Part shown: one piece after another, positions 7,153-53,893 of the stretch
Layout: each line of letters starts with the position of its first letter
Position numbering within the stretch: position 1 is the first letter of the stretch
DNA from: Thecamonas trahens ATCC 50062
Lineage: Eukaryota > Protista > Apusomonadida
Assembly (NCBI RefSeq): GCF_000142905.1
Contig: NW_013657677.1
Location: 458,024 to 522,023, forward strand
DNA: 64,000 nt
Direction: 5' to 3'
Made by a program: the position numbers and the translations under genes
The notes under the pieces: model-generated
Told to the model about the DNA's origin: nothing
Seen by the model: the letters and a program-made list of their open reading frames with translations, nothing else
The model's database searches: none

Positions 7153-9420
7153 CTAGGAGCGTACACGGCGGAGCATGCGGCGCTGGTTAGTGTGCTCGTA
7201 GGCGCCGCGCGAGATGGAGGCACCGATGGCGCGGCGGATGGTGTACTCCTTGTAACCGGCCTGAACCAGCTGGGTCTCGATGCGCTGCAGCGGCGCGGTG
7301 TGGCCGAGGGGAAGGATCTTGGCGAGGTGACGCTCGCAGTTCTCGAGAGCCACCTTCTCTTCTTCGGAGATGGGCCCCATGTCGAGGTGGCCCGACTCTG
7401 CAGCGTCGAGTGTGGAGACGCGGAAGAGGCGGAGGGCCTCATCGACGTGGCGTGGTTCTGCGACGGTAGCGAGCTCCATCTTGGCGAGCGACTCTGCAAT
7501 GCGGACGATGGCCTCGAGCTGACGGACGGTGATGGGGAAGGTGGCCATTTGGCCCGACTGGCGGGCAGCCTCGCGGACAGAGGAGCGAATATTGACGTAC
7601 TGGTTGGCGAGCGAGTCGGCGGCGGCCTGGGAGAGGCGCGGCGAGACCTTGGAGCGGGCGTAGGCGACGTACTTCTTGAGGAGCGGGATGGGCAGATCAC
7701 CGACGGTCCGCTCGATCTCAAGCGATTTGTGGATGGAGATGACGTGCTGGGCGATGCGACGGTCGTTGGCCTCATTCTTCTGGTCGCGGACGATAAAGAT
7801 GAGGTCGAAACGCGAGAGGATGGTGCCGCGGAAGTCGATCTGCTCTGCGGCGGACTTTGTCTCGTCGTACTTGCCAAACACCGGGTTTGCGGCGGCAAGG
7901 ACGGAAGTCCGCGAGTTGAGGATTGTGGTGATGCCAGCCTTGGCGATGGAGATGGTCTGCTGCTCCATGGCCTCGTGGATGGCGACGCGGTCCTCTTCGC
8001 GCATCTTGTCAAACTCGTCGATGCAGACAACGCCGCCGTCGGCAAGAACCATGGCGCCGGCCTCGAGGTAAAACTCGCGCGACGACGGGTCCTTGATGAC
8101 CGAGGCGGTGAGACCTGCGGCGGACGAGCCCTTGCCCGAGGTGTAGACGGCGATGGGCGCGACCTTTTCGACAAACTTGAGGAATTGCGACTTGCCTGTT
8201 CCGGGGTCACCGAGCAGTAGAACGTTGATGTCGCCACGCAAGCGCATGCCGTCGGGCAGCTGCTTGCGGGCGCCGCCAAAGAGGAGGCAGGCGATGGCCT
8301 TCTTGATGTCTTCGTGGCCAAAGATGGCCGGGTCAATCGAGTCCGCAATGTGGTTATAGATGTTGGGCTGCTCCGAAATGGCGCGGAGCTCCTCCTCCTC
8401 TTCGGGGGTGAACGAGGTGGAGGCGCGGCCGGTGCCATCCTCGTCGATGCGCATGCCGATGACGCGGACGTACGGCGAGGGGAGGCCGGCCGAGCGCGAG
8501 CGGCGGGTGGCGCCGGAAAAGGTGGTGTACTCGCCGGCGAGAGCGACCCGGGTTCCGGGCACAACCTTGTCAACCAGGTTGCGGTCGACTGAGAGGAGGA
8601 CCTGGCGCGGCATCTCACCGGTGGGCACGTCCTCAGGCGACTCCTGGAGCTTGAGCGTCTGCTGGTCGACGTAGTCGGACTTGTCGGCGACAATGAGGTA
8701 CGGATCGAGGCCGCAGTCGTCTCCCTGGCCCTGGCGGGCGCGGAGGCACTTACGCGGGACGACGATGCCCGAGAAGCCGAGCCGGCCCTTGAGCAACTGC
8801 TCGTCGGCGCAGGTCCGGCAACGGACGACGATGCCGGCGGCCTTGGCGCGGGTCCGCGACGCCGAGATGACGATGCCACGGATAAAGACTAGGCGCGAGA
8901 TGTGGACCGACATAAGGTCCCGGAGCTGGATGGGCACCGACGTGGTCTGCAGCATGACCTGGATGTCGGCAATAGCCGGGCTGCCGCCGGCGGCGCCTGC
9001 GCCGCCCAGCCCGCCGCCCACGCCACCCGCAGCGCCCTCCTTACCCGCCGCCAGCGGGTCGTCGTCAGGCAGCGCGCCGCCCGAGCCTCCGGGCGCAAAA
9101 ATCTGCTTGGCCGCGTCCTTGGCCGCCAGCTCAAACTGCTCCACATACTCTGCCGGCGCCTCAACCAGGGTGTCGGCCAGCGCCTCGTCGTAGGCCTTGA
9201 GGTGCTCGAGCTGGACCTCGAGCTGGTACTTGCGGAGGACGTAGTTGGCCCGGAGCTGGTCGCGGTAGGTAAAGACGTTACCGTCACGGAAGTTGCGAAT
9301 AAAGTTGAGGAACTTGGCCCGGGCGTCCGAAGGCTGCAGCGATGCCGCCGACCGGGGGACGAGCTCCTGGTCCGAGGTGAAAATTTGCCCAGCATCAAAG
9401 CCGGTGGCCACACCCGCCAT
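7153..9420 (-). CDS. MCM5: DNA replication licensing factor MCM5 (intronless)
   Basis: N-terminal GFDAGQIF, YRDQL, DQQTLKLQESPEDVPTGEMPR, Walker A GDPGTGKSQ, Walker B CIDEFDKM, Arg finger SRFD, ITVRQLEA. The true ATG is at 9420. Confidence 0.97.
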   Translation of the reverse strand: MAGVATGFDAGQIFTSDQELVPRSAASLQPSDARAKFLNFIRNFRDGNVFTYRDQLRANYVLRKYQLEVQLEHLKAYDEALADTLVEAPAEYVEQFELAAKDAAKQIFAPGGSGGALPDDDPLAAGKEGAAGGVGGGLGGAGAAGGSPAIADIQVMLQTTSVPIQLRDLMSVHISRLVFIRGIVISASRTRAKAAGIVVRCRTCADEQLLKGRLGFSGIVVPRKCLRARQGQGDDCGLDPYLIVADKSDYVDQQTLKLQESPEDVPTGEMPRQVLLSVDRNLVDKVVPGTRVALAGEYTTFSGATRRSRSAGLPSPYVRVIGMRIDEDGTGRASTSFTPEEEEELRAISEQPNIYNHIADSIDPAIFGHEDIKKAIACLLFGGARKQLPDGMRLRGDINVLLLGDPGTGKSQFLKFVEKVAPIAVYTSGKGSSAAGLTASVIKDPSSREFYLEAGAMVLADGGVVCIDEFDKMREEDRVAIHEAMEQQTISIAKAGITTILNSRTSVLAAANPVFGKYDETKSAAEQIDFRGTILSRFDLIFIVRDQKNEANDRRIAQHVISIHKSLEIERTVGDLPIPLLKKYVAYARSKVSPRLSQAAADSLANQYVNIRSSVREAARQSGQMATFPITVRQLEAIVRIAESLAKMELATVAEPRHVDEALRLFRVSTLDAAESGHLDMGPISEEEKVALENCERHLAKILPLGHTAPLQRIETQLVQAGYKEYTIRRAIGASISRGAYEHTNQRRMLRRVRS

Positions 9421-9574
9421 GGTTGGATGGGGAGGGGAGGGGTAGAGGGAGGGGTAGCGGTGTACGAGGGGGGGGGGGGGAGGGGAGGGGAAGATGGGGT
9501 GGCGATGGGGTTGATAGGGTTGATGGGGTGGAGGGGGAGGGGGGGGAGGGGGGGGGTAGTGGGTGAGACGATGA

Positions 9575-9740
9575 AAACGGTGGCTGGTGGCTGGCAATGA
9601 TGGTGGCTGGTGGCTGGCAATGGTGGTTGGCGGTGGCCGGGCGGTGGCTGGCAATGGTTGGCGGTGGCTGGCTGGCTGGCTGGCCGGCTGATTGGTGGCC
9701 GTTCGTTCGGTCGTTCGTTCGTTCGTTCGTTGGTTTGTTG
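9575..9740. repeat. Compound microsatellite (GGTGGCTGGCAAT-like units, (GCTG)n, (CGTT)n) in the divergent MCM5/HECT promoter
   Basis: Tandem units are directly visible in the sequence. Confidence 0.85.
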
Positions 9741-9777
9741 GTAAATGGCAGGTGATTTGCAATTGCCTCAGTGCCAC

Positions 9778-9789
9778 TTTGGCGCCAAA
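9778..9789. promoter_or_regulatory. Palindromic double E2F-like site TTTGGCGCCAAA
   Basis: A perfect 12-bp palindrome reading TTTGGCGC on both strands (E2F consensus TTTSSCGC), located between the divergent MCM5 and HECT genes. Confidence 0.55.
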
Positions 9790-9868
9790 CCAGTCTCTCT
9801 GCTGCAGTACGGCGACTGCGTTGCGCACTGCACCCCACAGGCAAGACCACGTCTCCCGAACCACGGCT

Positions 9869-12800
9869 ATGGCACAGGGCATGCTGCGAACGCACGGCAG
9901 TGTGCTGGAGGAGGTGAACGGGCGAGATGGTCGGGCGTCGCATCCGGTGACGCCGACGAAGGAGGCGATGGCGCTCGGTGGCGGGCTGGCGACCGAGACA
10001 TTCTGGTCGCCGATGGGCGAGGCTGGGGACGCGGTCTCGGTCGCATCGTCGTGCTGGTCGCCGGACAGCAGCAACGCGAGGCAGGGCGAGGCCGAGACTG
10101 ACGGCTCGTTGCTCTTCTCGGCGTCGTCGTCGTCAATTCTGGTCGAGTCGCTGTTCTCGTCGCCAGACGGTGGCAACGTGAGAGGCGGCGCCGGCGCCGC
10201 CGATGGCGGCAGCTCGCTGGACTTTCCGCTGTTTGAAGTCCGGTCTGGCTCACCGCCGGCATCGCCGAATGCCGACAAGGAGCCGTGGACGGCCTCGGTC
10301 TCATACTCGGTCTCGCCGTCGGTCTCGCCGTCTCTGCGTGAGGTGCGGCGCGAGGCCGCGGCACTCGGCAGCAGCAGCCTCCCGCGGATGAGCCACGCGC
10401 AGATCTCCAGCCTCCCGCACGCCACTCAGGTCGCGTACATGACCATGCAGCGTGCAGCGCTGGCAGCGGCCGAGGCGCAGCTCGCGCTCGAGTCACTCGC
10501 GGTCCAAGGCGGCTCGCAGGGCGCCCTCGACCGGCTAGCGCAGGTGCTCGAGGCAAAGAACGCCGAAGCCCGGAAGCAGCTGGCCGCTTTCGAGGCTGCG
10601 TACGGACGGACGCTGGCGCCGGCAGCGCCGCAGACGTATGACAGTGCGTGGATCTGCGCCCAGGCGCCGGCTACGCCCGAAATGCACTCGGGCGGGCACC
10701 TCCCGCTCGGGCTCAAGACCCACGAGGCGTTCCGGGCCGACGCGGAGCTGGGCGATGAGTTTGAGCTCGTCGACAGCGATGCAGTCTCTGGGCCAGGTAG
10801 CGTGGTGCTGATGCAGGAACGGACAACAGGAGTGGAGGTTCTGGTGCGGAGCTTCCGCACCTCGACGCCGCACGAATGGCACGCGCTCATCCGGCACCTG
10901 TCGGCGCTGCAGCGACTGAGCCACCCGGCGGTAGCGCGGCTGGTGGCCTTTTACCGCAGCGGCGGCTCGCGGACAAGCTGGCAGGTGGCGGTCCCGGCTG
11001 TGGCACACGCGTCAGTGAGCCGTTGGATGGCCGAGCTCGCCGAGTCGGCGCACACGGCGCGGGCGCAGCACGAGATCAAGCTCACATTTCTGCGGCAGCT
11101 TGCGAGCGCCGTCCACTACGTCCATGAAGCCGGCATTGCCGGGCTCAACCTCACCACTCCCGGCGCCGTGGTGGTCACTGCCGACGGCTCGCCGGTGCTC
11201 TGCGACTTTAGCGCGTCGTCCGACCCGGTCAACTCGCTGAGCAATACGCCGACCCGGGAGCTTGCCGTGCCGAGCGGTGGCGGCGACGCGCTGCTGCCGG
11301 CGCGGGCGCGCGATCTCGCAGAGCTCGGCGACCTCGCGGTGGCCCTCTTTGCCGAGCTCACCGGAGGCGGGCCGGTGGTCCGGGTCGACGGCGAACGGGC
11401 GGTGTGGGCGGCGAGGAGAGTGGCGGCCGAGGCACCGCTCCTCGCCTCGTTCCTCGCCTATCTCCTGCAGCCGACAAGCCAGCTCGAGGCGGCGCTGGCG
11501 AGCGTGCCCGGCGCTGGCGGAAGCATCCTGCTCCGGCATCCGCTGTTTGTGGCGCCGGTCGCGCCCAGCATCGGGTGCGAGCCGTCGGCGTACAACGCGA
11601 AGGAAGTCCGACTGGTGGCGCTGTTCAAGAAAATCCGCGCGCGAGTCTACAACGCCGGCAGGGCCAAGGTCGGCAAGATCATCATCCGGCGGATGTACCT
11701 AGTCCGCGACGCGCTCAACGTCTTCCAGAAAATTGCAGTCCTCGACCGGCCTGACTGGTGCTTCCGGCTCAACGTGGCTTTTGACGGTGAGCGCGGCGTC
11801 GACGCCGGTGGGCTCTCGTCGGACATGTTCACCCACGTCTTCCGTGCCCTCATCCACACACCGTTTCCGTACCGGTCGGCGCGGAGCAGTGCCGGCGACG
11901 ACGACGACGACGAGTTTGGCAGCGTGCCCGGGGGCTATGTCAAGTTCCGCGGCAAGCCGCTGTTTGAGGTTGCCGACGGTGGCGCCATGCCTGTGGCGCT
12001 CCCGCTTGGCGAGCCCTGCATCGACGCGGTCATGGACGCGCACGACATGGCCAAGGCGTTCCATTCGATCGGGCTTGTCCTCGGCAAGTGCTTTCTCGAC
12101 GGCTTCCTCATCGAAGACGTCTTTGCGCGCCCGCTGTACAGCTACCTCCTTGCGGCAGCACCGGCTATGGCCGGATGCAAGCTGGCAGCGGCCGGCGGCG
12201 AGGCAGAGATGCTGAGCGCGCTGTCGGCGGCGGCGGCCGAGACGAGCGCCAAGCTCGCGCTTGGGCTCGACGACCTTGCGGCGTTTGATCCTGTCAAGGC
12301 CGCGGCGCTTGGCGAGCTACTCAACGTAGCCGCGCCCGAAGAGCTGTACCTCTCGTTCCTCGATGTGGCGCCCGGGGCCAAGAGTGGCGGGACGGTGACG
12401 CGCGAGCGGACGTCGGCGTACGTGGCGGCAGTGGTGAGGCACGACTTGCTTGGGCGTGGGCGAGCCGAGTCGCTGGCGGCCATTGCGTGTGGATTCTATG
12501 ACGTCATTGCGCCGCTTCTTGGCGACGAGATGGTCCTTCTCTCGCCGACGTCGCTGCAGGCGCTCCTCTGCGGCGCCAAGGTTGTCGACGTGGAGGAGGT
12601 GGTAGCCAAGCTCGAGTTTATCGAGTATCCTGATGACGAGACCGCGAGCCTTGCAAAGGCGCAACTCGTCGCGGTCCTCCGCAAGTGGGGTACTGAGGCG
12701 ATGCAGCACGTTAAGGCGTTCCTCGAGTACGCCACGGCAGCGCCGATGGTGCCCGAGGGTAAGATTCGCGTGCAGCACGTGGCGGCGAGCGAGCTGCTGC

Positions 12801-44322: not shown

Positions 44323-47300
44323 ATGTTCGAAACTGCCAGTCCCAGTTCTCAACGCCATCGAATTGCCGCGCCACAGACCGGCGACTACCGATGCGAGGAT
44401 GGACCATGTGCGAGTAGCGGTGCCAAGCCCTGGACACACTCCTCGTCGCCGCCCTCATTGCCGTCGACGTCACCTCCTTCTAGTCCGGAGCTATCACCGC
44501 CTGTCCTGCCCCTGCGCTTGGCGTCTCCCCATAGGGAAGCCATGTCGCACTCGGCTCGCGGGGAGATTGGCCCGCCGGCGCTCCACGTCCTTGTTTCGCC
44601 CGAAGCAGCTACTGCCCACAGCGTGGTGTCGTCCACGGCCACCTCATTGGCATCGCCGGCATCCCCATTGTCGGCTTCGCCGCCGGCATCGTCATCACCG
44701 GCGTCGTCGGCCTCGGACGACGCCTCGCTCTCGTGCTCGTTCTCTCGCCGCATGATCTCTTCGACCGACGACGATGCTTCGGTCTCGTCGCGCGGGGCGT
44801 CGCTCACCATTGCCCGGCTTAATGCGCACCGTGTCGGTCGGCAGCAGGAGACATCGGTGACGTTCTCGGCGTCGCGGACCAAGCAGCTGCCCCGGCCTGG
44901 CCCGACCGCCACCGCCTCGCCGCTTGCTGGCCCGCGGCTCGGCACCATCATCGCCTCGGCCTCGCCGGCAAACTCTTCCGAGCACAACGAGGTCCAGCTC
45001 GTCTCGACAACCGGCGCTTCCAAGACACTTGAGGCTGTTCTCTGGACCGACCTCACCGTCGGCTCTCGCCTCGGCTCTGGTGGCTTTGGTGAGGTCTGGA
45101 CCGGGTTCTGGGGCGCGACGCCTGTAGCCATCAAGCGCCTCTCGCCCAAGGGCGAGGAGTCGCAGCAGGTAGCCGACCTTGTAGCTGAGGCATCGGTTCT
45201 TGCCTCGCTCTCACATCCCAATATTGTTCAGCTGTTGGCGGTCTGCACCGACGCGCCCAACCTGGCCATTGTCACCGAGCTCATGGAGTCTGGCGACCTC
45301 CATGCCGCGCTCTTTGGCTCGTCACGCCATCGCCGTCGCACGCCCGAACCTGCCAGCTCTACGGCGTCAGCGTCGTCATCTGACTCATCACCGGGCTCGA
45401 GCAACAACAAGTCAGGCGGCCGTGCCACAACCTCGTCAGGTTCGTCGAGCTCAGTGCCCTCCGGTGGCGCCGGCTCCAAGACTAGCACGCCGTCGTCGCC
45501 ATACTCGTCGCCGTGGTCTTCAATCCGCACATCGGCGCGGTCGTCGTTCTTCTCCCCCGCGCTCTCGGGGCGGCACAGTGCGTCTGGATCGCCGCTACTT
45601 GCAAGCGGCCAGCTCTCGGACAGGCTCAAGCTCTCGATTCTCCACGGCGTGGCATGTGGCATGGAGTACCTCCACCGGCACGGCATTTTGCACTGCGATC
45701 TCAAGCCGCGCAACATCCTGCTCTCTCGCGGCGGCTCTGTGGTCAAAGTTGCCGACTTTGGTCTCGCAGTCACGCTGCAAGACGACGAGACTCGCGGCTT
45801 TGCCGGCACTCCGCGCTATGCAGCGCCCGAAGTCATCATGGGTGATGCACCGACGGCCGCCGCAGACGTATTTTCCTTTGGCGTTCTCCTCTACGAGACC
45901 GCTACCCAGATGCGTGCCTTTGGCTCGGTCTCGCGAATCAAGAACTGTTACGCCCCTCTCCTGCCGCGTGCAGTCCTTAGGTCGACGACGACACTCGACG
46001 CCGACCTGCCAGATGTCTTCCACTCGCGCCTCTTCCGCATGGTCCTCCCGCTCATTGTGACCTGCATCGCTGAAGATCCGGTCGCCCGGCCGAGCTTTGC
46101 GGACCTCGCTGTCGCGTTTGCCTCGCTCGAGCAGCATGCCGCACAGGTGGGCCAGATTTTCCCGTCGGTCCCGCCGCTGCCGGACCCGGCTACCTCACTT
46201 GCGCGGCCCGATCTCGTGCGAACCGCTGTCCGGCTCCTTACCCAGTCTGTCAACGTTCTTGCCCATCCAGCAGGTGTTTGTTCGACATCACACGGGGCTA
46301 GTCGGTCGGCGGGTGGCCACAAGGCCGGGCTTTTACTCTCTGCTCCTGCCGGCGCAGGCAAAACCTGGCTCGCCACCCACGTTGCCCACAACCGTGAAGT
46401 GGGCGCTGCCTTTGTCGACGGCATCCACTGGTTCACCCTAGGCGCCCACCTCGAGCTATCGGCGCTGTATCCGGCGCTCGCACGCGAGCTCGGTATCAAG
46501 CTCTCGACACACCAGCAGCGGTCGATCAAGGCTGCCCGCGAGGCGCTCACGGCTGCCATAGCCTCGGCTTCCCTGCTCCTCGTCCTCGACAACCTGTCAT
46601 CTCCCGCGGAGCTTGCGCTTTGCGACGTACTGAGCGCTGCACCGCGCTCGCGGCTGCTTATTACGGCCCGCTCCGACGTGGCCCCAATGCTGCGCGGGCC
46701 AGCGTTACCACGACTCGACGCCTTTGCTCTGCCTCCGCTCTCAGACGCCGACGCGCGGGCGCTGCTTGCGCTTGCTGCGGCGTGCCCCATTAACGACCTT
46801 CCGCCCGAGGCCGACCCACTCCTAGTCGAGTGCGAGTCGCTGCCGATTGCGCTATCCCTCGTCGGAGCTGTCGTGGCCCACAAGCGCCAGTCGGCGTGGA
46901 AGTTTGCCCTTGACCAGGTGACCGAGTCCAAGTCGCGTGGGCTCTCGCCGCTGCGAATGGCGACTGCGCTCACGGTCCGTGCCATGCATGCGCTCCGGTT
47001 CCGATTTCTTGACCTGCAAGTCCTTCCGACGCTCACGCTGTTGCCCATCGACCCGCTGGTGGTCCTCTGGGGCTCGTTACCGGAGCCGCTCTCCGAGTAC
47101 GACATCGATGCCGTGCTCGACGAGTTTGCAAGGCATGGGCTCGTGCGGCTGTCGAACCCATCGACCTCGTCGCACGCTGTGTTGGCCTTTACCATTCTGC
47201 CCAATGCCGCCGATTATCTGGCATGGGAAGTACGGGCTGATACTCGCCGACATGTTGCAGCCCACGCCGCCATTCTCGACGCGTACAAGACCACGAGCAA

Positions 47301-50300
47301 GCTCCAATCGTGGGTCTGCGGTCCTGTTACCCACGACGCGTACTACCGGCAGCACACTGTACGGCACTTGCTTGCGGTCAACGCTCTCCAAGACGCAATC
47401 GACCTTGTCACGTCGTTTGAGTGGTATCTCAAGTCTTCACGCGCCGAGCGCGACGCCGAGCCGTGGCTCTCGGCTGGCGCAGATGGCCTTGCATCGTATC
47501 TTGCCGACTTGGGGCGCGTGGTGATGGCGGCCAAGCGGGCACGGCTGCCGGTGGTCAAGGACCTTCTCTTGCTCCGCGAGCTGTTTTCTCTCTCGCGGTC
47601 TGCGCTCCTGCGGTACCCATCTATGGTCGGCTACCAGTTTCTCGGCCGGCTGTGGCCGGTGCCTGACCTCGCGGATGTACCTGTGGCCATTGCGCGGTTT
47701 GTGGACGCTGCTCTTGTGCACAAGTCACGCGGACACTTGCTGTATGTGCCGCGGACTCGCCTGCTCACCGCGCACGGAGGCGCGATGGACTCGGTCCTCC
47801 GCTCGCATCCTCACCCGATCCATGATGTTGTCTCACTCGGAGGACCGATGTTTGCCTCGCTCTGTGCCGACTCGGTCTGTGTCTGGGACATTAGTGCCGA
47901 GGCCTGGCACGAGTACCCGCTCGGCTTTCTCATGCCGCCAACGCTTGGAGGCTCACCAAGCCCCAACACAGCTGGTGTGGGAGGCGGTCCCGGATTAAGT
48001 GCCAGAGCCTCGTCTGGCCTGCAGTTGCTCGGCAGTGACGGCTTCCTCGGCATTGTCGCCGACGGCTGTATCCGCATCTTCTCGGTAGACGCCGACGCAG
48101 GCGTTGGCTCGGCCATCAACGAGTACAACTCGTACACTCGCGGGTCGTCGGCGGTGATCACCAGCGCAGCCCTAGTCGAAATGGATGACGACATGTACAT
48201 TGTCATGCTGGTGTGCAGCGAGGGCTGTGCGACGCTCCGGGCGAGGCTGCTGACACCGGCTGGTTTTACGCCCAACTCGTCTCCGGCCTGCTCGCCGGCG
48301 CCGAGCGGCCTCGACGGTGCGGGCCTCGTCGAGGCTATCGAGCTGCCAAGCGGGCTCGGTTACGTTGATGTGCTGCCTGCGCGCGAGGCGCCGCTGGCTG
48401 CAGTTGTGGCGCCGCAAGCAGGCATTGTCACCGTCGTCGATTATGACGTCGGCGCGGTCCTATTCCATGCCACACTCCCGGTCTCGGTCCGTATCGCTGA
48501 CATGTCGGTGGTCGAGTTGGCTTGCGATGGTACCATGCTCGCTGTTGCGTCGCCAGACCGGATCCTCCTGTGGACGACCGAGAACGACGGTAGCTGCTTG
48601 TTTGACCTCGCCAACGCCGTCGAGCCTATGGTCACACTCGACGTCAAGCACGCCAGCGCTTTGCAGTTTGTGCCCGAGTCGACGCTCTTGCTCGTCAGCC
48701 AGCCGTCTGGCCACTTGTGCGTTGCCTCGACGGCGTCTGGGAGGATGCTCGGCAAGCTCCGCGTCCACGTCCCGACAGCCGTCACAGCACTCTCGGCCGC
48801 CAAGGTTGACGACCGGTACATGGTGGTCTCTGGCGACGCCGACGGTGTGCTTGGGGTGTGGTCGGCTAGTGGACTTGTCAACCAGCTCTCGACTATGTCG
48901 CTGGCAGGCGGTGCGCACCGTGGGCTCGCCCACCGCGCGCCGGTCACCTCGCTTGCGGTCCATCCTGACGGAAGCCTGGTGGTGACCGGCTCGAGCGACC
49001 GAACGCTGCGTGTGTACTCCAGTGACTCGCAGACGGTGGTCGCCATTCTTGTGGGCCACAGTTCACGAGTTATTGCCCTGACCTGGATGAGCAAGACCAT
49101 GCTTGCGTCCATTGACGACAACGGCACGGTCGCGCAATGGCATGTATCTAGAGCAGACGCCCACATGGTGGCCAAGGGTGCGCTGCCGACGCTCGGCGCC
49201 GTCGGTGCTGCGGTATGGCTCGGCACCCGCATCTTTGTCGGCTTTACCAACGTCATGGATCGCATTCCGGCCGTCCAGGCCTTTGACATGGTCCGCTCCG
49301 AGGGCGGAACCGGCGCCGTGCTGGACCTACCGTTTGTCCACGGCTTTACCGGTGTGGCCGGCTCGTTTCTCGCTGCTGCGTCATGTCTCCTTGTCACTCG
49401 TTGCTCGCTTCCCGACTCAACGTCTGCCGTGGTCCACAACACCTCGACGCTGAAGCCGGTAGCACGGCTGGAGGGACTCCACTTTGCGCCGCTGACCTGT
49501 GCACACATGCTCGAGGTTGCATCGCGGGTGTTTGTGGCAACGGGCGCGCTCGACAATTCGGTGGTAGTTTGGGACGCCCGTAGCGGCGCCGCGCTCTGCA
49601 CGTTGACAACCCGCAACGGGACGGTGGCGGCATTGCGACTGTTCACATTTCACGGCTCGCCGTCACTGCATCTCGCAGTTGCCGACACCGGGCGATCGCC
49701 GGGCATACTTGTGGTGGCGCTGCGCGCGGCGGCGCTTGCGTCCGGCACGGTCTCTTCTGACGGTGACGGCGAAGGCGAGAAGGCTAAGAGCCGGTTGCGG
49801 CGCAAAGCCAAGTCGCGCCGACGTCGCAAGGGCAAGTCATTGCTCAAGGGCACTGTCTTGGAGGAGCTTGCGGACGCAACCATGCTGCGGGTCTTCTCGC
49901 GGCGGATCCACCAGCTCGACGCCGGGTGTGCGCTGCTGGAGGTGTGTGACTCGGGCGCATCGCTGTTTGTGGTGGTAACCGAGGCGCGAACGTTCCACCA
50001 TCTAACGTCGCTCGCGGTGCTTCGTGACGCAGCCGAGGCCGACCAACAGCGCGGCGTACTCGAGACGCTGTGGCACTCGCTGCGGAGCGCGTGGCATCGT
50101 GCGCAGTGGCATGAAAACCGGCTGCATGATTCGCGTGCAGTCCGCAACGCCTCTGTCGGGTACCTTGTGACTCACGCAGGGCAGAGCCGTGGCCAGATTG
50201 CGGAGCAACCGGTCTCGCTCGAGCTGCTGCGAGCCAACGCAGTGGTGGTGGTGAAGACTGCAGGCCGGGTGTACGTATGGCGTGGCCCGCGGGCGCCACG

Positions 50301-52475
50301 GCGAGTCATGGTGCGGGCCATCACACTGGCGCAGTCGCTGACAAAGCAAGGTCGACGAATGCCGCTGGTGATCCTGGGTGCATGCGATGGTGTTGCGCGC
50401 GGCGTGTCCAAGACGATGAACAAGGATCTTTTCGCGATTGAGCCGCCGTACGACGCGCTCTGGCGTGTGCTTGTGCCTCCCGAGTCGGAGGGCAACTACG
50501 CGCAAGTGGCGCAGGTCAAGGCGGCCGACGAGCTGCGACCGGTCTCTGTCGAGTGGCTGCGGGCGCTGGCGGCCGAGTGGCAGCGGCTGCACGAGGTGTG
50601 CGACGACCGTGCGGATGGTCTCGTGGCGCGCGAGGTGGCCCGCGGTGTGCTCTACTCAGAGTACCTTTCTTCAAGCGGTGTGTTCCTCATCGGGACCCTG
50701 GTTGGGCTCTGGGTCTGGGTCGGCGACGATGTACCCGAGGGCTTGCGAGCCAAGGTGCTTCAGCTCGTCCGCGAGATGGACAACAGTGCAGGGTCTGGCG
50801 ATGATGGGCGAATGCTGCTGAACACGTATCCGTGGGATGCGGAGCAACGGCCGATGGCATGGCAAAGGCTCCAGGTGGTGTATGACGGCTCAGAGCCGGT
50901 CATTTTGCGTTCTGCACTCTCTACGGCTGCCGCGCCGAGTTCGGAAGAGAGCTCGCCGCTCAGCACGGCGGCATGGACGGGCGATTCGTCGACCGCGAGC
51001 CAATCGGCGCCGTCGGTATCGTCTGCCGGCGCGCCGCGCGATCTTTGGATGGAGCTTGCGGATGGGCCAGAGTCGTGGTACGAGCCGGCGCGATACGGGC
51101 TGCCGTGGCTGGAGCAGCGGGCGCTGATGAGCGCGGCGTCGACAACGACGACCAGCACAGGTTCATCGGGTGGCTCGGGAGCAGAGCTGGAGCGCGTACA
51201 CGACTCGCAGATCCGCATTCTCTCGCGGGTCTTGTGCTTGTTGAGGACAGTGAGCGGGCGTGGCAGTGGGACGAGTTTGGTTCTGTCTTTTTCATGGGCT
51301 GCGCCATGGTTGTATGTGCCATTGTCCAGTACCCGAGCCAGACGGCTGAGGTGGCGGCAAGTGGCGGCATGGTGACGCGGGCGCATGTGTGGCTCTGGGT
51401 CGGCGAGGAGCTGGCGAGCGGAAGCAACAGTGCATCGTCGTCGATCTCGGAGAGCGCGTCGTCGCACGACCATCTGCTGAATGCAGTCTCGAGTGCGATG
51501 TGGATGCAAGACCTACAGCTAGGTATGCCGGGTACGCCGGTGGTGACGCTGGTCCGGGCTGGATGCGAGGATGGCGTCTTCCGCATGGTCGTGCCGAACA
51601 TGGTGGTGCTTCGCGGGTCGCCGCGGCGGTTTGAGAGCTGTGACGAGATTCTCAGTCGGGCACTGGCATTCAAGGTTGGCTCGTCGTCGAGCTCGCACTC
51701 GGCAGCCGATGGCGAGGGCGAGAACATTGCGGAGATTGGCGTGCCGTCGCCGTCACTGTCGCCGTCGCCGCTGGTGCCTGCACCCGGGGTCGATGATGGC
51801 GGCATGCGGTTCCATGTCAACGCACGGACGCGGATGGTGGTGGAGCTGGTTGACTGCTGCGAGTCAGCAAGCGTGCTGGATGCTTCATCGGTGTACGCAG
51901 TCGTGGCGCCGCCGTCTGTGCGAATGTGGGCCGGACCGGGGGCGTCGGAACGCGCCCGCGACGTGGCAACGCACCTGGTGGGCGAAACGAGCGCTATGTT
52001 CGAGCGGCTGCTGGGTGTGTCGATGCAGCCGCTTGCGGTAGCTGCGGCTGGCATGGCGCCAACAGCAATTGGGCTGAACGGAGAGACTACCAATGTGTGG
52101 CGCGGGTCAGAGCTCTTTATGATTGTCGACTTTTCCGGCCCGGTCGACAACCCGGTGGTGACGGTCCATCCAGTCCTTGACGAGCGGCGGGGCGAGGTGG
52201 CGCTGCGGACGCGGTTGCTGGACGATCTGGCGACGTCGGCATTTCTGGTAGTTGTCTTTCCGGACGCGTCTGTCCACGGGCGGCAGGTCGGCTGGTGGTC
52301 GCGGTCGCCGCGGCCCGAGGCCAGCCACCTCGACGCGCTGGCCGGCCTTGCCTCGCGGTTCTTGGCCAGCAGCGGTCCCGAGCCACCAGTATTTACTTCT
52401 GGCAAGCCTGCTGCCGCCACTGACCTGCTGTTTGAGCTTGATCGCGTCGATCTTGATCTTGCGTTTGTACTGTAA
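44323..52475 (+). CDS. Multidomain protein: TKL kinase, NB-ARC (Apaf-1-like STAND), WD40, gelsolin/villin-like repeats (frame break at ~51227)
   Basis: Kinase: GSGGFGEV, VAIK, HCDLKPRN, DFGLA, GTPRYAAPE. STAND: APAGAGKT, F.DGIHW, LLLVLDNL, RLLITAR, C.SLPIAL. WD40: AHRAPVTSLAVHPDGSLVVTGSSDRTLRVY, VATGALDNSVVVWD. Gelsolin-like: VYVWRG, LWVWVG, GSEP, VWLWVG, RMWAG. Confidence 0.85.
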
Positions 52476-52628
52476 CAAAGTCGACATGTAGCTGTCTGGG
52501 TGTGTGGGCTATTGGGGACCAGCCGGCGGGTGGGCTGCAGGTGGCGGGCCGACCAACGGGCGAGTGGCGGTTGACGGCGGGGCGAAACACGCAACTCTGA
52601 CCCTCCCCCACAGCGACACAGCAGGACG

Positions 52629-53893
52629 ATGGCGCACTCGTACTCGACCGAGATGCTGGAGGAGGCTCTCCGGGAGCGGTTGGACACGCTCACCGGCTTT
52701 GGCTCGCCCGAGGCCAAGGCCCGTAAGCTCGCGGAGGTCTTCAAGAAGGTCGACACCAACGGGTCGGGCTGCGTCGACGGCAACGAGTTCCTGACTGCCA
52801 TGGCCGAGCTCAACTTTCTGGACGTCCCCGGTCTCATGGGTATGTGCTAGAGGAGTGGAAGGTGGGGGGTATGAGGAAGAGGGAGGAGGGGGGGGGGGGG
52901 CGGTATCGCCGTTGGAACGACGGTGGAATGCAAAGTGACGGTGTGGGGACTGACAGACTCTTTTGGGGTGCTGGCGTGTGACTGGGGGCTATGGTGCGGG
53001 GCATGGGTACGGGAGTGGTGATGGCAGATCTGTTCAACAAGTACGACGTGGACGGGACCAACACACTGGACATTGAGGAGTTTGCAGAGGGCTTCACAGG
53101 TCTGCGGACAACGGCTGCGGATGTCGACGCGACAACCCGGTCTGTTCTCGGCCAGCTGCGCAACGCCATTGCGCGGCGTGGTGGGCTGAACGGGATCCGG
53201 TCCCTTGGGCGGCTCTTCCGTATCATCGACGACTCGGGCAATGGGCGGCTGAGTTACGATGAGCTCAAGTTTGGCCTCCTCGACTTTGGGCTCGACTTTT
53301 CAGAGCGCAAGGTCAACATGGTCATCGAAGCCTTTGATCGCAACCACGATGGCGTGATCGACTACAACGAGCTGCTCCGTGGTCTGCGCGGCAAGATGAA
53401 CAAGCGGCGGCGCGAGCTCGTGCTCCGGGCCTTTGACGTCATCGACAAGGACGGCTCGGGCGTGCTGACTATCGAGGACCTCGCCAACGCATACGACACC
53501 TCGCTGCATCCTGACGTGGTGAGCGGGTCGGCGACAGCCGACGACGTACTGCGGGAGTTCCTTGGCCAGTGGGAGACGGTCAAGCGCGACGGCCTCGTCG
53601 ACCGCAACGAGTTCCTCGACTACTTTAAGGACCTCTCGGCGTCGGTCGACAACGACGACTACTTTGAGCTCATGATCAAGAACTGCTACCGCATCTTTGA
53701 CACCGGCGAGGGCGTTGCCGGCAACACGGCTAACATGCGGGTCCTTGTGGTCTTCCGCGACGGCCGGCAGGAGGTTGTGCCCCTGCACAACGACCTGGGC
53801 ATCGACCGCGACAATATCACCGCCATCAAGCTCCAGCTCTACAAGCAGGGCATCGAGCCGCAGAGCATCGAGCGCATTGAGACTGCGTACTAA
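52629..53893 (+). CDS. Calcyphosin-like EF-hand protein; intron 52840-53027
   Basis: RG..GIRSLGRLFRIIDDSG, FDRNHDGVIDYNE, DKDGSGV, HPDV..G, EF.DY..DLSASVDND.YF, plus two extra N-terminal EF hands. The intron GTATGT...CAG is phase 1. Confidence 0.92.

Follow-up and report, generated by a model that had tools for sequence, protein, structure and literature searches.

An intronless gene joining a TKL kinase, an Apaf-1-type switch, WD40 repeats and a diverged gelsolin-like tail in the apusomonad Thecamonas trahens

In the apusomonad Thecamonas trahens ATCC 50062, a marine flagellate, a single intronless gene of 2,717 codons on the forward strand encodes a STAND protein that is composed of a Ser/Pro-rich N-terminus, a TKL-type kinase, an Apaf-1-type nucleotide switch, a WD40 region, a basic linker and a tail of five diverged gelsolin-like repeats, the last of which is putative. 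We propose that this protein acts as a switch and that its tail is tied to actin or to a regulator of actin, a reading to which a probability of roughly 0.6 is assigned. The gene lies in a window of 64,000 nucleotides of contig NW_013657677.1, to which all positions refer, and its parts are the following.

44323-52475, + strand: whole gene, 2,717 codons with the missing T counted (ORFs and reads)
44323-45054, + strand: Ser/Pro-rich low-complexity N-terminus (sequence composition)
45055-46110, + strand: TKL-type protein kinase domain (Pfam E ~1e-46; catalytic motifs)
46336-46932, + strand: NB-ARC nucleotide-binding domain and HD1 (Pfam NB-ARC, 43 bits; curated cut-off 23.5)
46933-47424, + strand: winged-helix domain and start of an Apaf-1-type HD2 (BLASTP HSP to Nematostella Apaf-1)
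47770-49770, + strand: WD40 beta-propeller region (Pfam WD40, 48 bits, and many propeller models; PDB)
49774-49839, + strand: Lys/Arg-rich basic linker between WD40 region and tail (same place in the C11 and C30 paralogs)
49903-50154, + strand: conserved segment ahead of R1 (alignment with a paralog and an environmental ortholog)
50155-50463, + strand: gelsolin-like repeat R1, core VYVWRGP (hhalign 96.5-96.8%; 23.9 bits with the own-genome HMM)
50587-50919, + strand: gelsolin-like repeat R2, core LWVWVGDD, end GSEPVILRSAL (hhalign 91.6-92.1%; villin match)
50920-51183, + strand: Ser/Thr-rich linker; the C11 paralog stops just before its equivalent (alignment)
51184-51620, + strand: probable gelsolin-like repeat R3, G1/G4 type with insert, core VWLWVGEE (hhalign 30-39%, E 3e-4 to 5e-4)
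51231-51233, + strand: assembly error, one T absent from the reference, run at 51232-51233 (inserted T in 4/4 runs)
51804-52082, + strand: gelsolin-like repeat R4, core VRMWAGPG (hhalign 83%; 13.0 bits with the own-genome HMM)
52113-52472, + strand: putative repeat R5, core VGWWSRS, and C-terminus (colinear tail alignment; Atlas match of the ortholog)
52473-52475, + strand: stop codon (ORF)

As deposited, the locus reads as two overlapping ORFs in different frames, 44323-51375 (2350 aa) and 50973-52475. An earlier note, made from the letters alone, had claimed one gene with a single-base frame error at ~51227 and had asked for reads across this site. In all four independent public runs mapped to the locus, an extra T is present behind 51231, about 5 nt from the predicted position, and joins the ORFs into one frame; the reference is, thus, short of one T at 51232-51233. 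One of these runs is a DNA metagenome, another is a further T. trahens data set and two are metatranscriptomes, the contigs of which span the insertion site with the extra T and, coming from RNA libraries, may contain DNA. The reference as it stands, together with its public model of 2,350 residues, would favour two separate genes, i.e., a STAND kinase ending at 51375 and a downstream gelsolin-like gene starting at 50973 or later. This is contradicted by the frame-fusing T in the four runs, by P0002, an environmental ortholog that carries both halves of the tail in a single frame, and by repeat R3, within which the frame break falls; two genes are, hence, regarded as very improbable. Due to the one base missing from the assembly, the public protein model, which stops at 51375, is 367 residues too short and wrong in its last 48 residues, and the last three gelsolin repeats are hidden. 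The only annotation given to the family is 'TKL protein kinase'.

In the N-terminal region ahead of the kinase, no Pfam match and no recognisable domain was found. The kinase domain (Pkinase/PK_Tyr_Ser-Thr in Pfam, aa 245-596) contains all expected motifs—the G-loop GSGGFGEV, VAIK, HCDLKPRN, DFG and APE—and is interrupted by a Ser-rich insert of ~100 aa at ~45316-45615; its closest solved relative in a PDB search is CTR1 (1.7e-34). The assignment of an intact TKL kinase in the earlier note is, thus, upheld, and catalytic competence is predicted from the motif set. A CARD, which recruits a caspase in Apaf-1 orthologs proper, was not found in the Pfam search, and the kinase occupies the N-terminal place instead.

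The NB-ARC domain (aa 672-870) is composed of a Walker A motif APAGAGKT (46342-46365), a Walker B motif LLLVLDNL (46573-46596), whose second acidic position is Asn (D-N), a sensor-1 Arg motif LLITAR (46654-46674) and SLPIAL (46834-46854), and its best matches in the PDB are plant helper NLRs and Apaf-1 (2e-8 to 1e-7). One colinear BLASTP HSP to residues 246-612 of Nematostella Apaf-1 (E 3e-20) spans the NBD, HD1, the winged-helix domain and the start of HD2, running into the motif YYRQHTVRHL at 47341-47370. Both the STAND NTPase, with every motif quoted for it, and the Apaf-1-type helical region had been recognised correctly from the letters alone. The winged-helix His of the MHD/LHD motif contacts ADP. 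This His is absent from the window protein, where ILP (47188-47208), already read at this position before, is aligned with IHN of Nematostella Apaf-1; a paralog has MLT here. Because of the absent His and the D-N form of Walker B, nucleotide control may differ from that of Apaf-1. For the WD40 region, likewise found as claimed, Pfam WD40 and propeller models match at ~aa 1404-1778, and WD40 proteins in the PDB are matched down to 2e-31; distinct repeats are seen at ~48532-49656, while the N-terminal part of the region is degenerate.

Of the domain-by-domain check that the earlier note had proposed, the Pfam part succeeded for kinase, NB-ARC and WD40, but not for the tail, for which gelsolin homology comes from profiles. 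On the tail of the window protein itself, Pfam Gelsolin (PF00626) gives no match at a threshold as loose as E<=10, and a genome-wide scan with it gives 27 matches elsewhere and zero at this locus. Free-standing gelsolin proteins occur in the T. trahens genome. A three-sequence profile of tail region A matches villin (7.5e-8) and gelsolin (5e-7) in the PDB, and all of its matches with E below 2 are gelsolin-family proteins; for tail region B, the matches are gelsolin or villin throughout (17/17, best 0.002). Furthermore, the tail reaches 41.6 and 14.6 bits with an HMM built from gelsolin domains of the same genome, the maximum among 404 shuffled or reversed controls being 4.2 bits. The hhalign values were obtained against a profile of these same T. 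trahens domains. On this basis, three of the five repeats that had been claimed (R1, R2 and R4) are well supported, and R3 is a probable gelsolin-like repeat, with a profile and PDB match to gelsolin G4-G6 and in register with the corresponding repeat of P0005, a second environmental relative. R5, which reaches 0.3-0.4% in hhalign when taken alone, is putative; its assignment draws on the colinear whole-tail alignment, in which R3 and R5 are both in register, and on the structural match that the ortholog gives in the ESM Atlas. The segment 49903-50154 gave no gelsolin signal in hhalign.

Among the family-bearing feature matches that the tail of the ortholog P0002 has in the ESM Atlas, the ten best all fall into gelsolin-family clusters. 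The Atlas model of P0002 aligns to gelsolin over residues 293-958 with a TM of 0.46, and villin is also matched. The AlphaFold2 models of the window protein are poor (pLDDT 39.5 and 33.9), so that the Foldseek matches obtained with them (gelsolin-family chains only, TM 0.15-0.28) are no trustworthy fold comparison of the protein itself. As type-2 Ca2+ ligands of gelsolin domains, we take an Asp before the core strand and a Glu in the long helix. In our reading of the alignment at these positions, the ligands are not kept in R1, with Asn for Asp and Arg or Val for Glu, or in R2, with Gly and Leu. These changes suggest an altered biochemistry of a tail that, judged by its sequence, is far diverged from canonical gelsolin and probably is not a Ca2+-regulated severing module. 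The gelsolin fold also occurs in proteins without actin binding, Sec23/24 among them.

The T. trahens genome contains three such genes, on contigs C3 (the window gene), C11 and C30, and single-ORF versions are present in environmental assemblies of two uncultured relatives (P0002 and P0005). Like the window gene, the C30 paralog and its ortholog P0005 encode kinase, NB-ARC (89.8 bits), WD40, basic linker and five gelsolin repeats in one ORF, and the window-type and C30-type tails are colinear over 676 columns (93.1%). Unlike the window gene, the C30 type has gelsolin repeats that are recognised by Pfam (36 to 63 bits; 36.1 bits for the C30 tail and 62.7 bits for P0005, cut-off 21) and a C-terminal Cys-rich finger, whereas the window tail is much more diverged and without finger; the NB-ARC regions of the two types are only ~30% identical. 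The P0002 tail, with ~30% identity to that of the window protein, also passes the Pfam model (31.6 bits). In the C11 paralog, R1-R2 are present and R3-R5 absent, and the C53 family member lacks the entire tail; the tail is, therefore, dispensable for at least some family members. In an exhaustive search with tail region A, 3 clusters only were retrieved among 1.84 billion proteins, which indicates a small family limited to one lineage. As to the earlier statement that no protein of this architecture has been described, no paper was found in which gelsolin is combined with NB-ARC or with NLR integrated domains, but the gene itself is not unique, being one of three paralogs and having relatives in two environmental assemblies.

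From these components and by analogy with Apaf-1 and NLRs, we infer a switch in which the NB-ARC domain would be kept closed by the WD40 region, perhaps with help from the tail, until a ligand or some change at the sensor end frees it. Nucleotide-dependent oligomerisation would then gather the N-terminal kinase domains, which, being brought together, are proposed to trans-phosphorylate and signal. The gelsolin tail would be an integrated extra domain, gained once in the common ancestor of the small gene family. Its most likely role is to connect the switch with actin or with a protein that regulates actin, where the tail would serve as an anchor or else as a surface that is sensed or acts as bait. 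Any immune or other biological role is likewise conjectural. As a candidate function, the earlier note had put forward an actin-coupled, oligomerising signalosome that would respond to cytoskeletal disturbance or to ingested bacteria.

Different roles of the tail have been weighed against this reading. The protein could be a regulator of the cytoskeleton rather than an immune or death sensor, i.e., a ROCO/LRRK2-like scaffold kinase whose tail sits on actin filaments and whose NB-ARC domain gates the kinase in gliding, pseudopod formation or phagocytosis. The five repeats are kept over a deep divergence (~30% identity to P0002, colinearity with the C30 type), which gives the tail a closer resemblance to a housekeeping module than to a bait that evolves fast; moreover, the WD40 region is apparently without homogenised hypervariable repeats and the flanking genes are ordinary cell-biology genes. 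The NB-ARC/WHD/HD2 module, however, otherwise characterises switches in death and immunity, and the confinement to a small one-lineage family, with the few clusters found in the region A search, likewise speaks against a cytoskeletal regulator, which we consider a possible but minority explanation. Unlikely is a tail that serves as an integrated bait, where intracellular bacteria or viruses that manipulate the flagellate's actin regulators would bind or modify the tail, the switch, released in this way, would oligomerise and the kinase would fire. If so, an NLR-ID-type guard of the actin cytoskeleton would have arisen in a close unicellular relative of animals and fungi, independently of the plant NLR-IDs.

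Likewise unlikely is that the tail is a decaying remnant of an ancestral fusion without function of its own, leaving only the kinase-NB-ARC-WD40 core to matter. Its loss of recognition by Pfam, the altered Ca2+-ligand positions (as read from the alignment), and the absence of R3-R5 from C11 and of the whole tail from C53 would fit such a decay. Yet ~770 codons have stayed open in a genome of 65% GC, their sole break being an assembly error, and a comparison of the window protein with P0002 (~30% identity) shows the hydrophobic cores and the V-W-x-G strands preserved in each of the five repeats. The strain variants in the region (7 synonymous and 7 non-synonymous), although too few to test, are unlike those of a free-running pseudogene. 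We retain the proposed switch with an actin-linked tail as the preferred reading.

Apusomonads branch beside animals and fungi. The connection of an Apaf-1-type module to a kinase in an apusomonad would imply that other outputs were coupled to the apoptosome scaffold before, or alongside, the recruitment of caspases. With the gelsolin array behind the sensor repeats, a domain combination not found in the literature, a connection of a STAND switch to the actin cytoskeleton becomes open to testing, whether the array is an anchor or an integrated decoy. The decoy concept has been developed mainly in plants until now.

Compared with known systems, the protein belongs to an established kind, the NLR/Apaf-1-like STAND proteins with an integrated domain; new is the combination of kinase, NB-ARC, WD40 and gelsolin, for which no paper was found. 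Apaf-1, the scaffold of the animal apoptosome, is composed of CARD, NB-ARC, WHD, HD2 and two WD40 propellers. The order NB-ARC (with Walker A, Walker B and sensor-1 Arg), winged helix, HD2 and WD40 is shared, and the module is colinear with that of Nematostella Apaf-1 over ~370 residues at an identity of only ~25%. The window protein differs in its kinase in place of the CARD, the replacement of the MHD His by Leu (ILP), the D-N form of Walker B and a tail of ~860 residues beyond WD40.

Fungal NLRs combine Pkinase with NACHT or NB-ARC and WD40, TPR or ANK repeats, and extra non-canonical C-terminal domains are discussed there as integrated decoys (PMC12258605). The fusion of a kinase to a STAND NTPase and a repeat sensor is common to both, but gelsolin is never mentioned for the fungal proteins (PMC12258605). 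The kinase of the window protein is, in turn, TKL-type and N-terminal, and its host is an apusomonad, not a fungus.

In the gelsolin/villin superfamily, Dictyostelium villidin consists of WD repeats, gelsolin repeats and a headpiece, and flightless-I of LRR and gelsolin repeats. Tandem gelsolin-like repeats behind a repeat domain are shared with the window protein, whose R3 has the long-insert G1/G4 look. To our knowledge, such superfamily proteins carry neither STAND module nor kinase; the window protein differs from them also by five rather than six repeats and unconserved Ca2+-ligand residues, and no villin headpiece was found in it by Pfam. In plant NLR-IDs (RRS1-WRKY, RGA5-HMA), a STAND receptor carries, behind its sensor repeats, an added domain that derives from a host protein. 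The likeness to these is architectural only: the gelsolin tail is placed after the WD40 sensor end, in a genome that also holds free-standing gelsolin proteins, as in an integrated-decoy layout.

The observation that a single gene of Thecamonas trahens joins a kinase, an NB-ARC module, WD40 repeats and a gelsolin-derived tail is confirmed, and its interpretation has partial support: the architecture stands, and the function is a prediction. In the reference assembly (28.7 Mb, 131 contigs; the window corresponds to C3:458024-522023 and has a G+C content of ~65%), the gene is spread over two open reading frames:

44323..51375, + strand: ORF 1, 2,350 aa, overlapping ORF 2 in a different frame
50973..52475, + strand: ORF 2, overlapping ORF 1 in a different frame

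The stretch 48500-53500 was compared with four public runs, comprising an estuary DNA metagenome (X4), a data set from 2020 that carries the label of this organism (X6), and marine metatranscriptomes from two different studies (X11 and X13). All four runs carry one T inserted behind position 51231, which is the sole indel reported in this stretch, and contigs span the break site in each run (e.g., a 3,023-nt piece covering 48735-51756 in X6, 51101-51292 in X13, and 51210-51607 in X4). The reference assembly is in error at the frame break; with the inserted T, the first frame continues into the second, resulting in one gene of 2,717 codons at 44323-52475. The earlier note had postulated one gene of about 2,700 aa and a single -1 correction at ~51227, a position no more than five bases from the inserted T. 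In the public protein model, which ends at residue 2,350, the last 48 residues are wrong. An intron as the cause of the frame change was rejected, because contigs from DNA and RNA libraries agree in having one added base, with no joint at this position; the joints 48945>53152 and 50586>52399 come from metagenome contigs, where each side measures just 21-24 nt, and were disregarded as chimeric. RNA-library contigs span much of 51100-52350, which is consistent with the tail being transcribed, DNA carry-over being another possible source.

Several further features of this stretch were recorded. At 51181, all four runs have T versus G in the reference (Ala to Ser in the window gene); either the reference contains another erroneous base here, or the difference from the sequenced clone is fixed. 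Strain variants amount to seven synonymous and seven non-synonymous changes, a count too small to use. In the Ser-rich linker between the third and fourth tail repeats (51673-51839), depth leaps to 30-100x in metagenome and metatranscriptome runs with short contigs of ~31 nt, probably low-complexity matches from other organisms; a T>C change at 51757, a site of inflated depth within this low-complexity stretch, is attributable to these contigs. An antisense ORF opposite the gelsolin tail (50960..52837, - strand, 625 aa, ATG start) has no Pfam match and is most likely a high-G+C artefact. Estuary, seawater and subsurface samples from several studies contain contigs at least 99% identical to the window gene, both in metagenomes and in metatranscriptomes; hence, T. 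trahens or very close strains are widespread in such samples.

In front of the tail, Pfam recognises the following domains:

aa 245-596: protein kinase (Pkinase/PK_Tyr_Ser-Thr), E about 1e-46
aa 672-870: NB-ARC, 43 bits (cut-off 23.5)
aa about 1404-1778: WD40, together with many propeller models

This bears out the intact TKL-like kinase and the WD40 repeats of the earlier note. The kinase has kept its catalytic motifs (G-loop, VAIK, HCDLKPRN, DFG, and APE), is interrupted by a Ser-rich insert of ~100 residues, and has the TKL kinase CTR1 as its closest solved relative (1.7e-34). The solved structures with matches to the NTPase region include plant helper NLRs (2e-8) and Apaf-1 (about 1e-7), and a single colinear BLASTP alignment to residues 246-612 of Nematostella Apaf-1 (E 3e-20) covers the NBD, HD1 and winged helix and reaches into HD2. 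Within this alignment, YYRQHTVRHL pairs with the Apaf-1 HD2 helix, as expected for the Apaf-1-type helical region that had been proposed. The STAND NTPase motifs had likewise been read correctly, i.e., Walker A (AGAGKT), Walker B (LLLVLD-N), sensor 1 (LLITAR), the GxP-like SLPIAL, and, at the MHD position, ILP, in which His is replaced by Leu; a paralog has MLT there. Given ILP in place of MHD, the way in which the closed state contacts ADP probably differs from that in Apaf-1.

The assignment of the tail, i.e., region A (repeats R1-R2) and region B (R3-R5), required profile methods. Pfam Gelsolin has no match in the window's own tail pieces even at E<=10, and a genome-wide scan retrieved 27 canonical gelsolin repeats at other loci and none at this locus; thus, the proposed per-domain Pfam check succeeded for kinase, NB-ARC and WD40, but not for the tail. 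This miss reflects the limits of the model, not missing homology. A phmmer search with residues 1901-2300, run exhaustively against 1.84 billion representative proteins, returned only three clusters: the protein itself, its paralog on contig C11 (P0003), and an environmental ortholog (P0002). The latter, a 962-residue metagenome fragment, contains the WD40 end, region A, the linker and region B in one frame, which demonstrates the fusion without recourse to the reads, and exceeds the Pfam Gelsolin cut-off (31.6 bits vs 21). On its metagenome contig (L015:1-1370), the upstream WD40 part lies in frame 3 and the called gene in frame 2, so that the gene call begins at an internal Met; a frame error or a short intron could account for the frame difference near 1300-1370.

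Tail profiles were built from few sequences (the window protein and relatives); in our own-script alignment, the two frame pieces were joined with an X at the break, and search queries were left unjoined. Against all PDB sequences, the region A profile matched villin (7.5e-8) and gelsolin (5e-7), and all matches with E below 2 belong to the gelsolin family, including fragmin, adseverin, CapG, and Asgard 2DGel proteins; region B had 17 matches, each to gelsolin or villin (best 0.002). An HMM of 13 canonical gelsolin domains from the same genome scored 41.6 bits for region A and 14.6 bits for region B, with a maximum of 4.2 bits among 404 shuffled or reversed controls. In hhalign comparisons with the own-genome gelsolin profile, R1 reached 96.5-96.8%, R2 91.6-92.1%, R4 83%, R3 30-39% (E 3e-4 to 5e-4), and R5 0.3-0.4%. 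In the ESM Atlas, the best ten family-bearing feature hits of the P0002 tail are all gelsolin-family clusters (top 0.94), and the Atlas model of P0002 aligns with gelsolin over residues 293-958, covering all five repeats, at a TM of 0.46. The AlphaFold check suggested earlier gave models too poor as structures (pLDDT 39.5 for region A from a 3-row and 33.9 for region B from a 2-row alignment); Foldseek retrieved exclusively gelsolin-family chains with them (1.7e-7 and 1.3e-4), but at TM 0.15-0.28, and since Foldseek also scores residues, these lists count as weak support. The tail is gelsolin-derived but very diverged. From the gelsolin-like repeats originally read (about five), R1, R2 and R4 are established (hhalign 83% or more), R3 is probable, with its long-insert G1/G4 look and closing 'F..V.N.VV..G' segment, and R5 is putative, being placed by register.

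Of about 21 NB-ARC loci in the genome, five carry a kinase in front (the window gene on contig C3, and genes on C11, C30, C53, and C15); XP_013760351.1, a paralog from the same assembly, is annotated 'TKL protein kinase [Thecamonas trahens ATCC 50062]'. The C11 paralog has 36% identity overall and the same domain order and ends after R2, R3-R5 being absent when looked for; no tail was found in C53. The C30 paralog comprises a kinase, NB-ARC (90 bits), WD40, Pfam-recognised gelsolin repeats (36 bits), and a Cys-rich end. Its ORF (L019:1296-7640) shifts frame into ORF 7508-9916 within the gelsolin tail (L019:7440-7700, equal to G000:C30:78440-78700), probably another assembly error, because no frame change interrupts its environmental ortholog P0005. 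P0005 is a single ORF of 2,269 aa on a 6,961-nt contig, with the kinase C-terminus, NB-ARC (89.8 bits), WD40, and Gelsolin (62.7 bits). In the C15 gene (G000:C15:407601-408515, L022), the open frame extends over just 1,100 aa, and searches gave no WD40 match.

The tail profiles of the window and C30 subfamilies align in one colinear stretch (676 columns, 93.1%, E 3e-7), in which the V-W-x-G cores coincide with the matching P0005 cores, the R5 core lying only near its counterpart. A Lys/Arg/Gly-rich linker from WD40 to tail is common to all three tailed paralogs. The window gene is a much more diverged sister of the C30 paralog. The NB-ARC tree joins C3 with C11 (100/99), then C53 (97/96), with C30 outside. 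Because sequences are few and branches long, we can only infer the tail history; the simplest one would be a single five-repeat gelsolin acquisition, followed by loss in C53 and truncation in C11.

If the protein follows the established mechanism of Apaf-1 and NLRs, its C-terminal repeats would hold the NB-ARC module closed until a ligand opens it, nucleotide exchange would drive oligomerisation, and proximity in the oligomer would activate the N-terminal effector domains, here kinases. The gelsolin-derived tail could anchor this switch to actin, a putative activity, or itself serve as the surface that is sensed. As read from the tail alignment, R1 and R2 of the window protein have not kept the Asp and Glu that form the type-2 Ca2+ ligands of gelsolin domains, and Pfam found no villin headpiece in the tail; hence, gelsolin-like Ca2+-regulated severing is not expected. 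As to actin itself, the best T. trahens copy (L016:1498-2700, G000:C39, minus strand) has a stop-free in-frame intron that appears as a Pro/His-rich insert after 'AVFPS', and a second actin (L017:1492-2619) is intronless.

Repeat domains joined to gelsolin arrays are known from villidin and flightless-I, and the module of NB-ARC, WHD, HD2, and WD40 is common to Apaf-1 and the window protein. In the searched literature, no single protein was found described in which gelsolin stands together with NB-ARC or with NLR integrated domains, in line with the novelty that had been claimed for the four-part architecture. Judged from sequence, this is an undescribed domain combination of a lineage-restricted family, in a lineage relevant to the origin of the animal cell-death machinery. 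Among fungal NLRs, architectures of kinase, STAND and repeats are known, and additional C-terminal domains are discussed as integrated decoys (PMC12258605).
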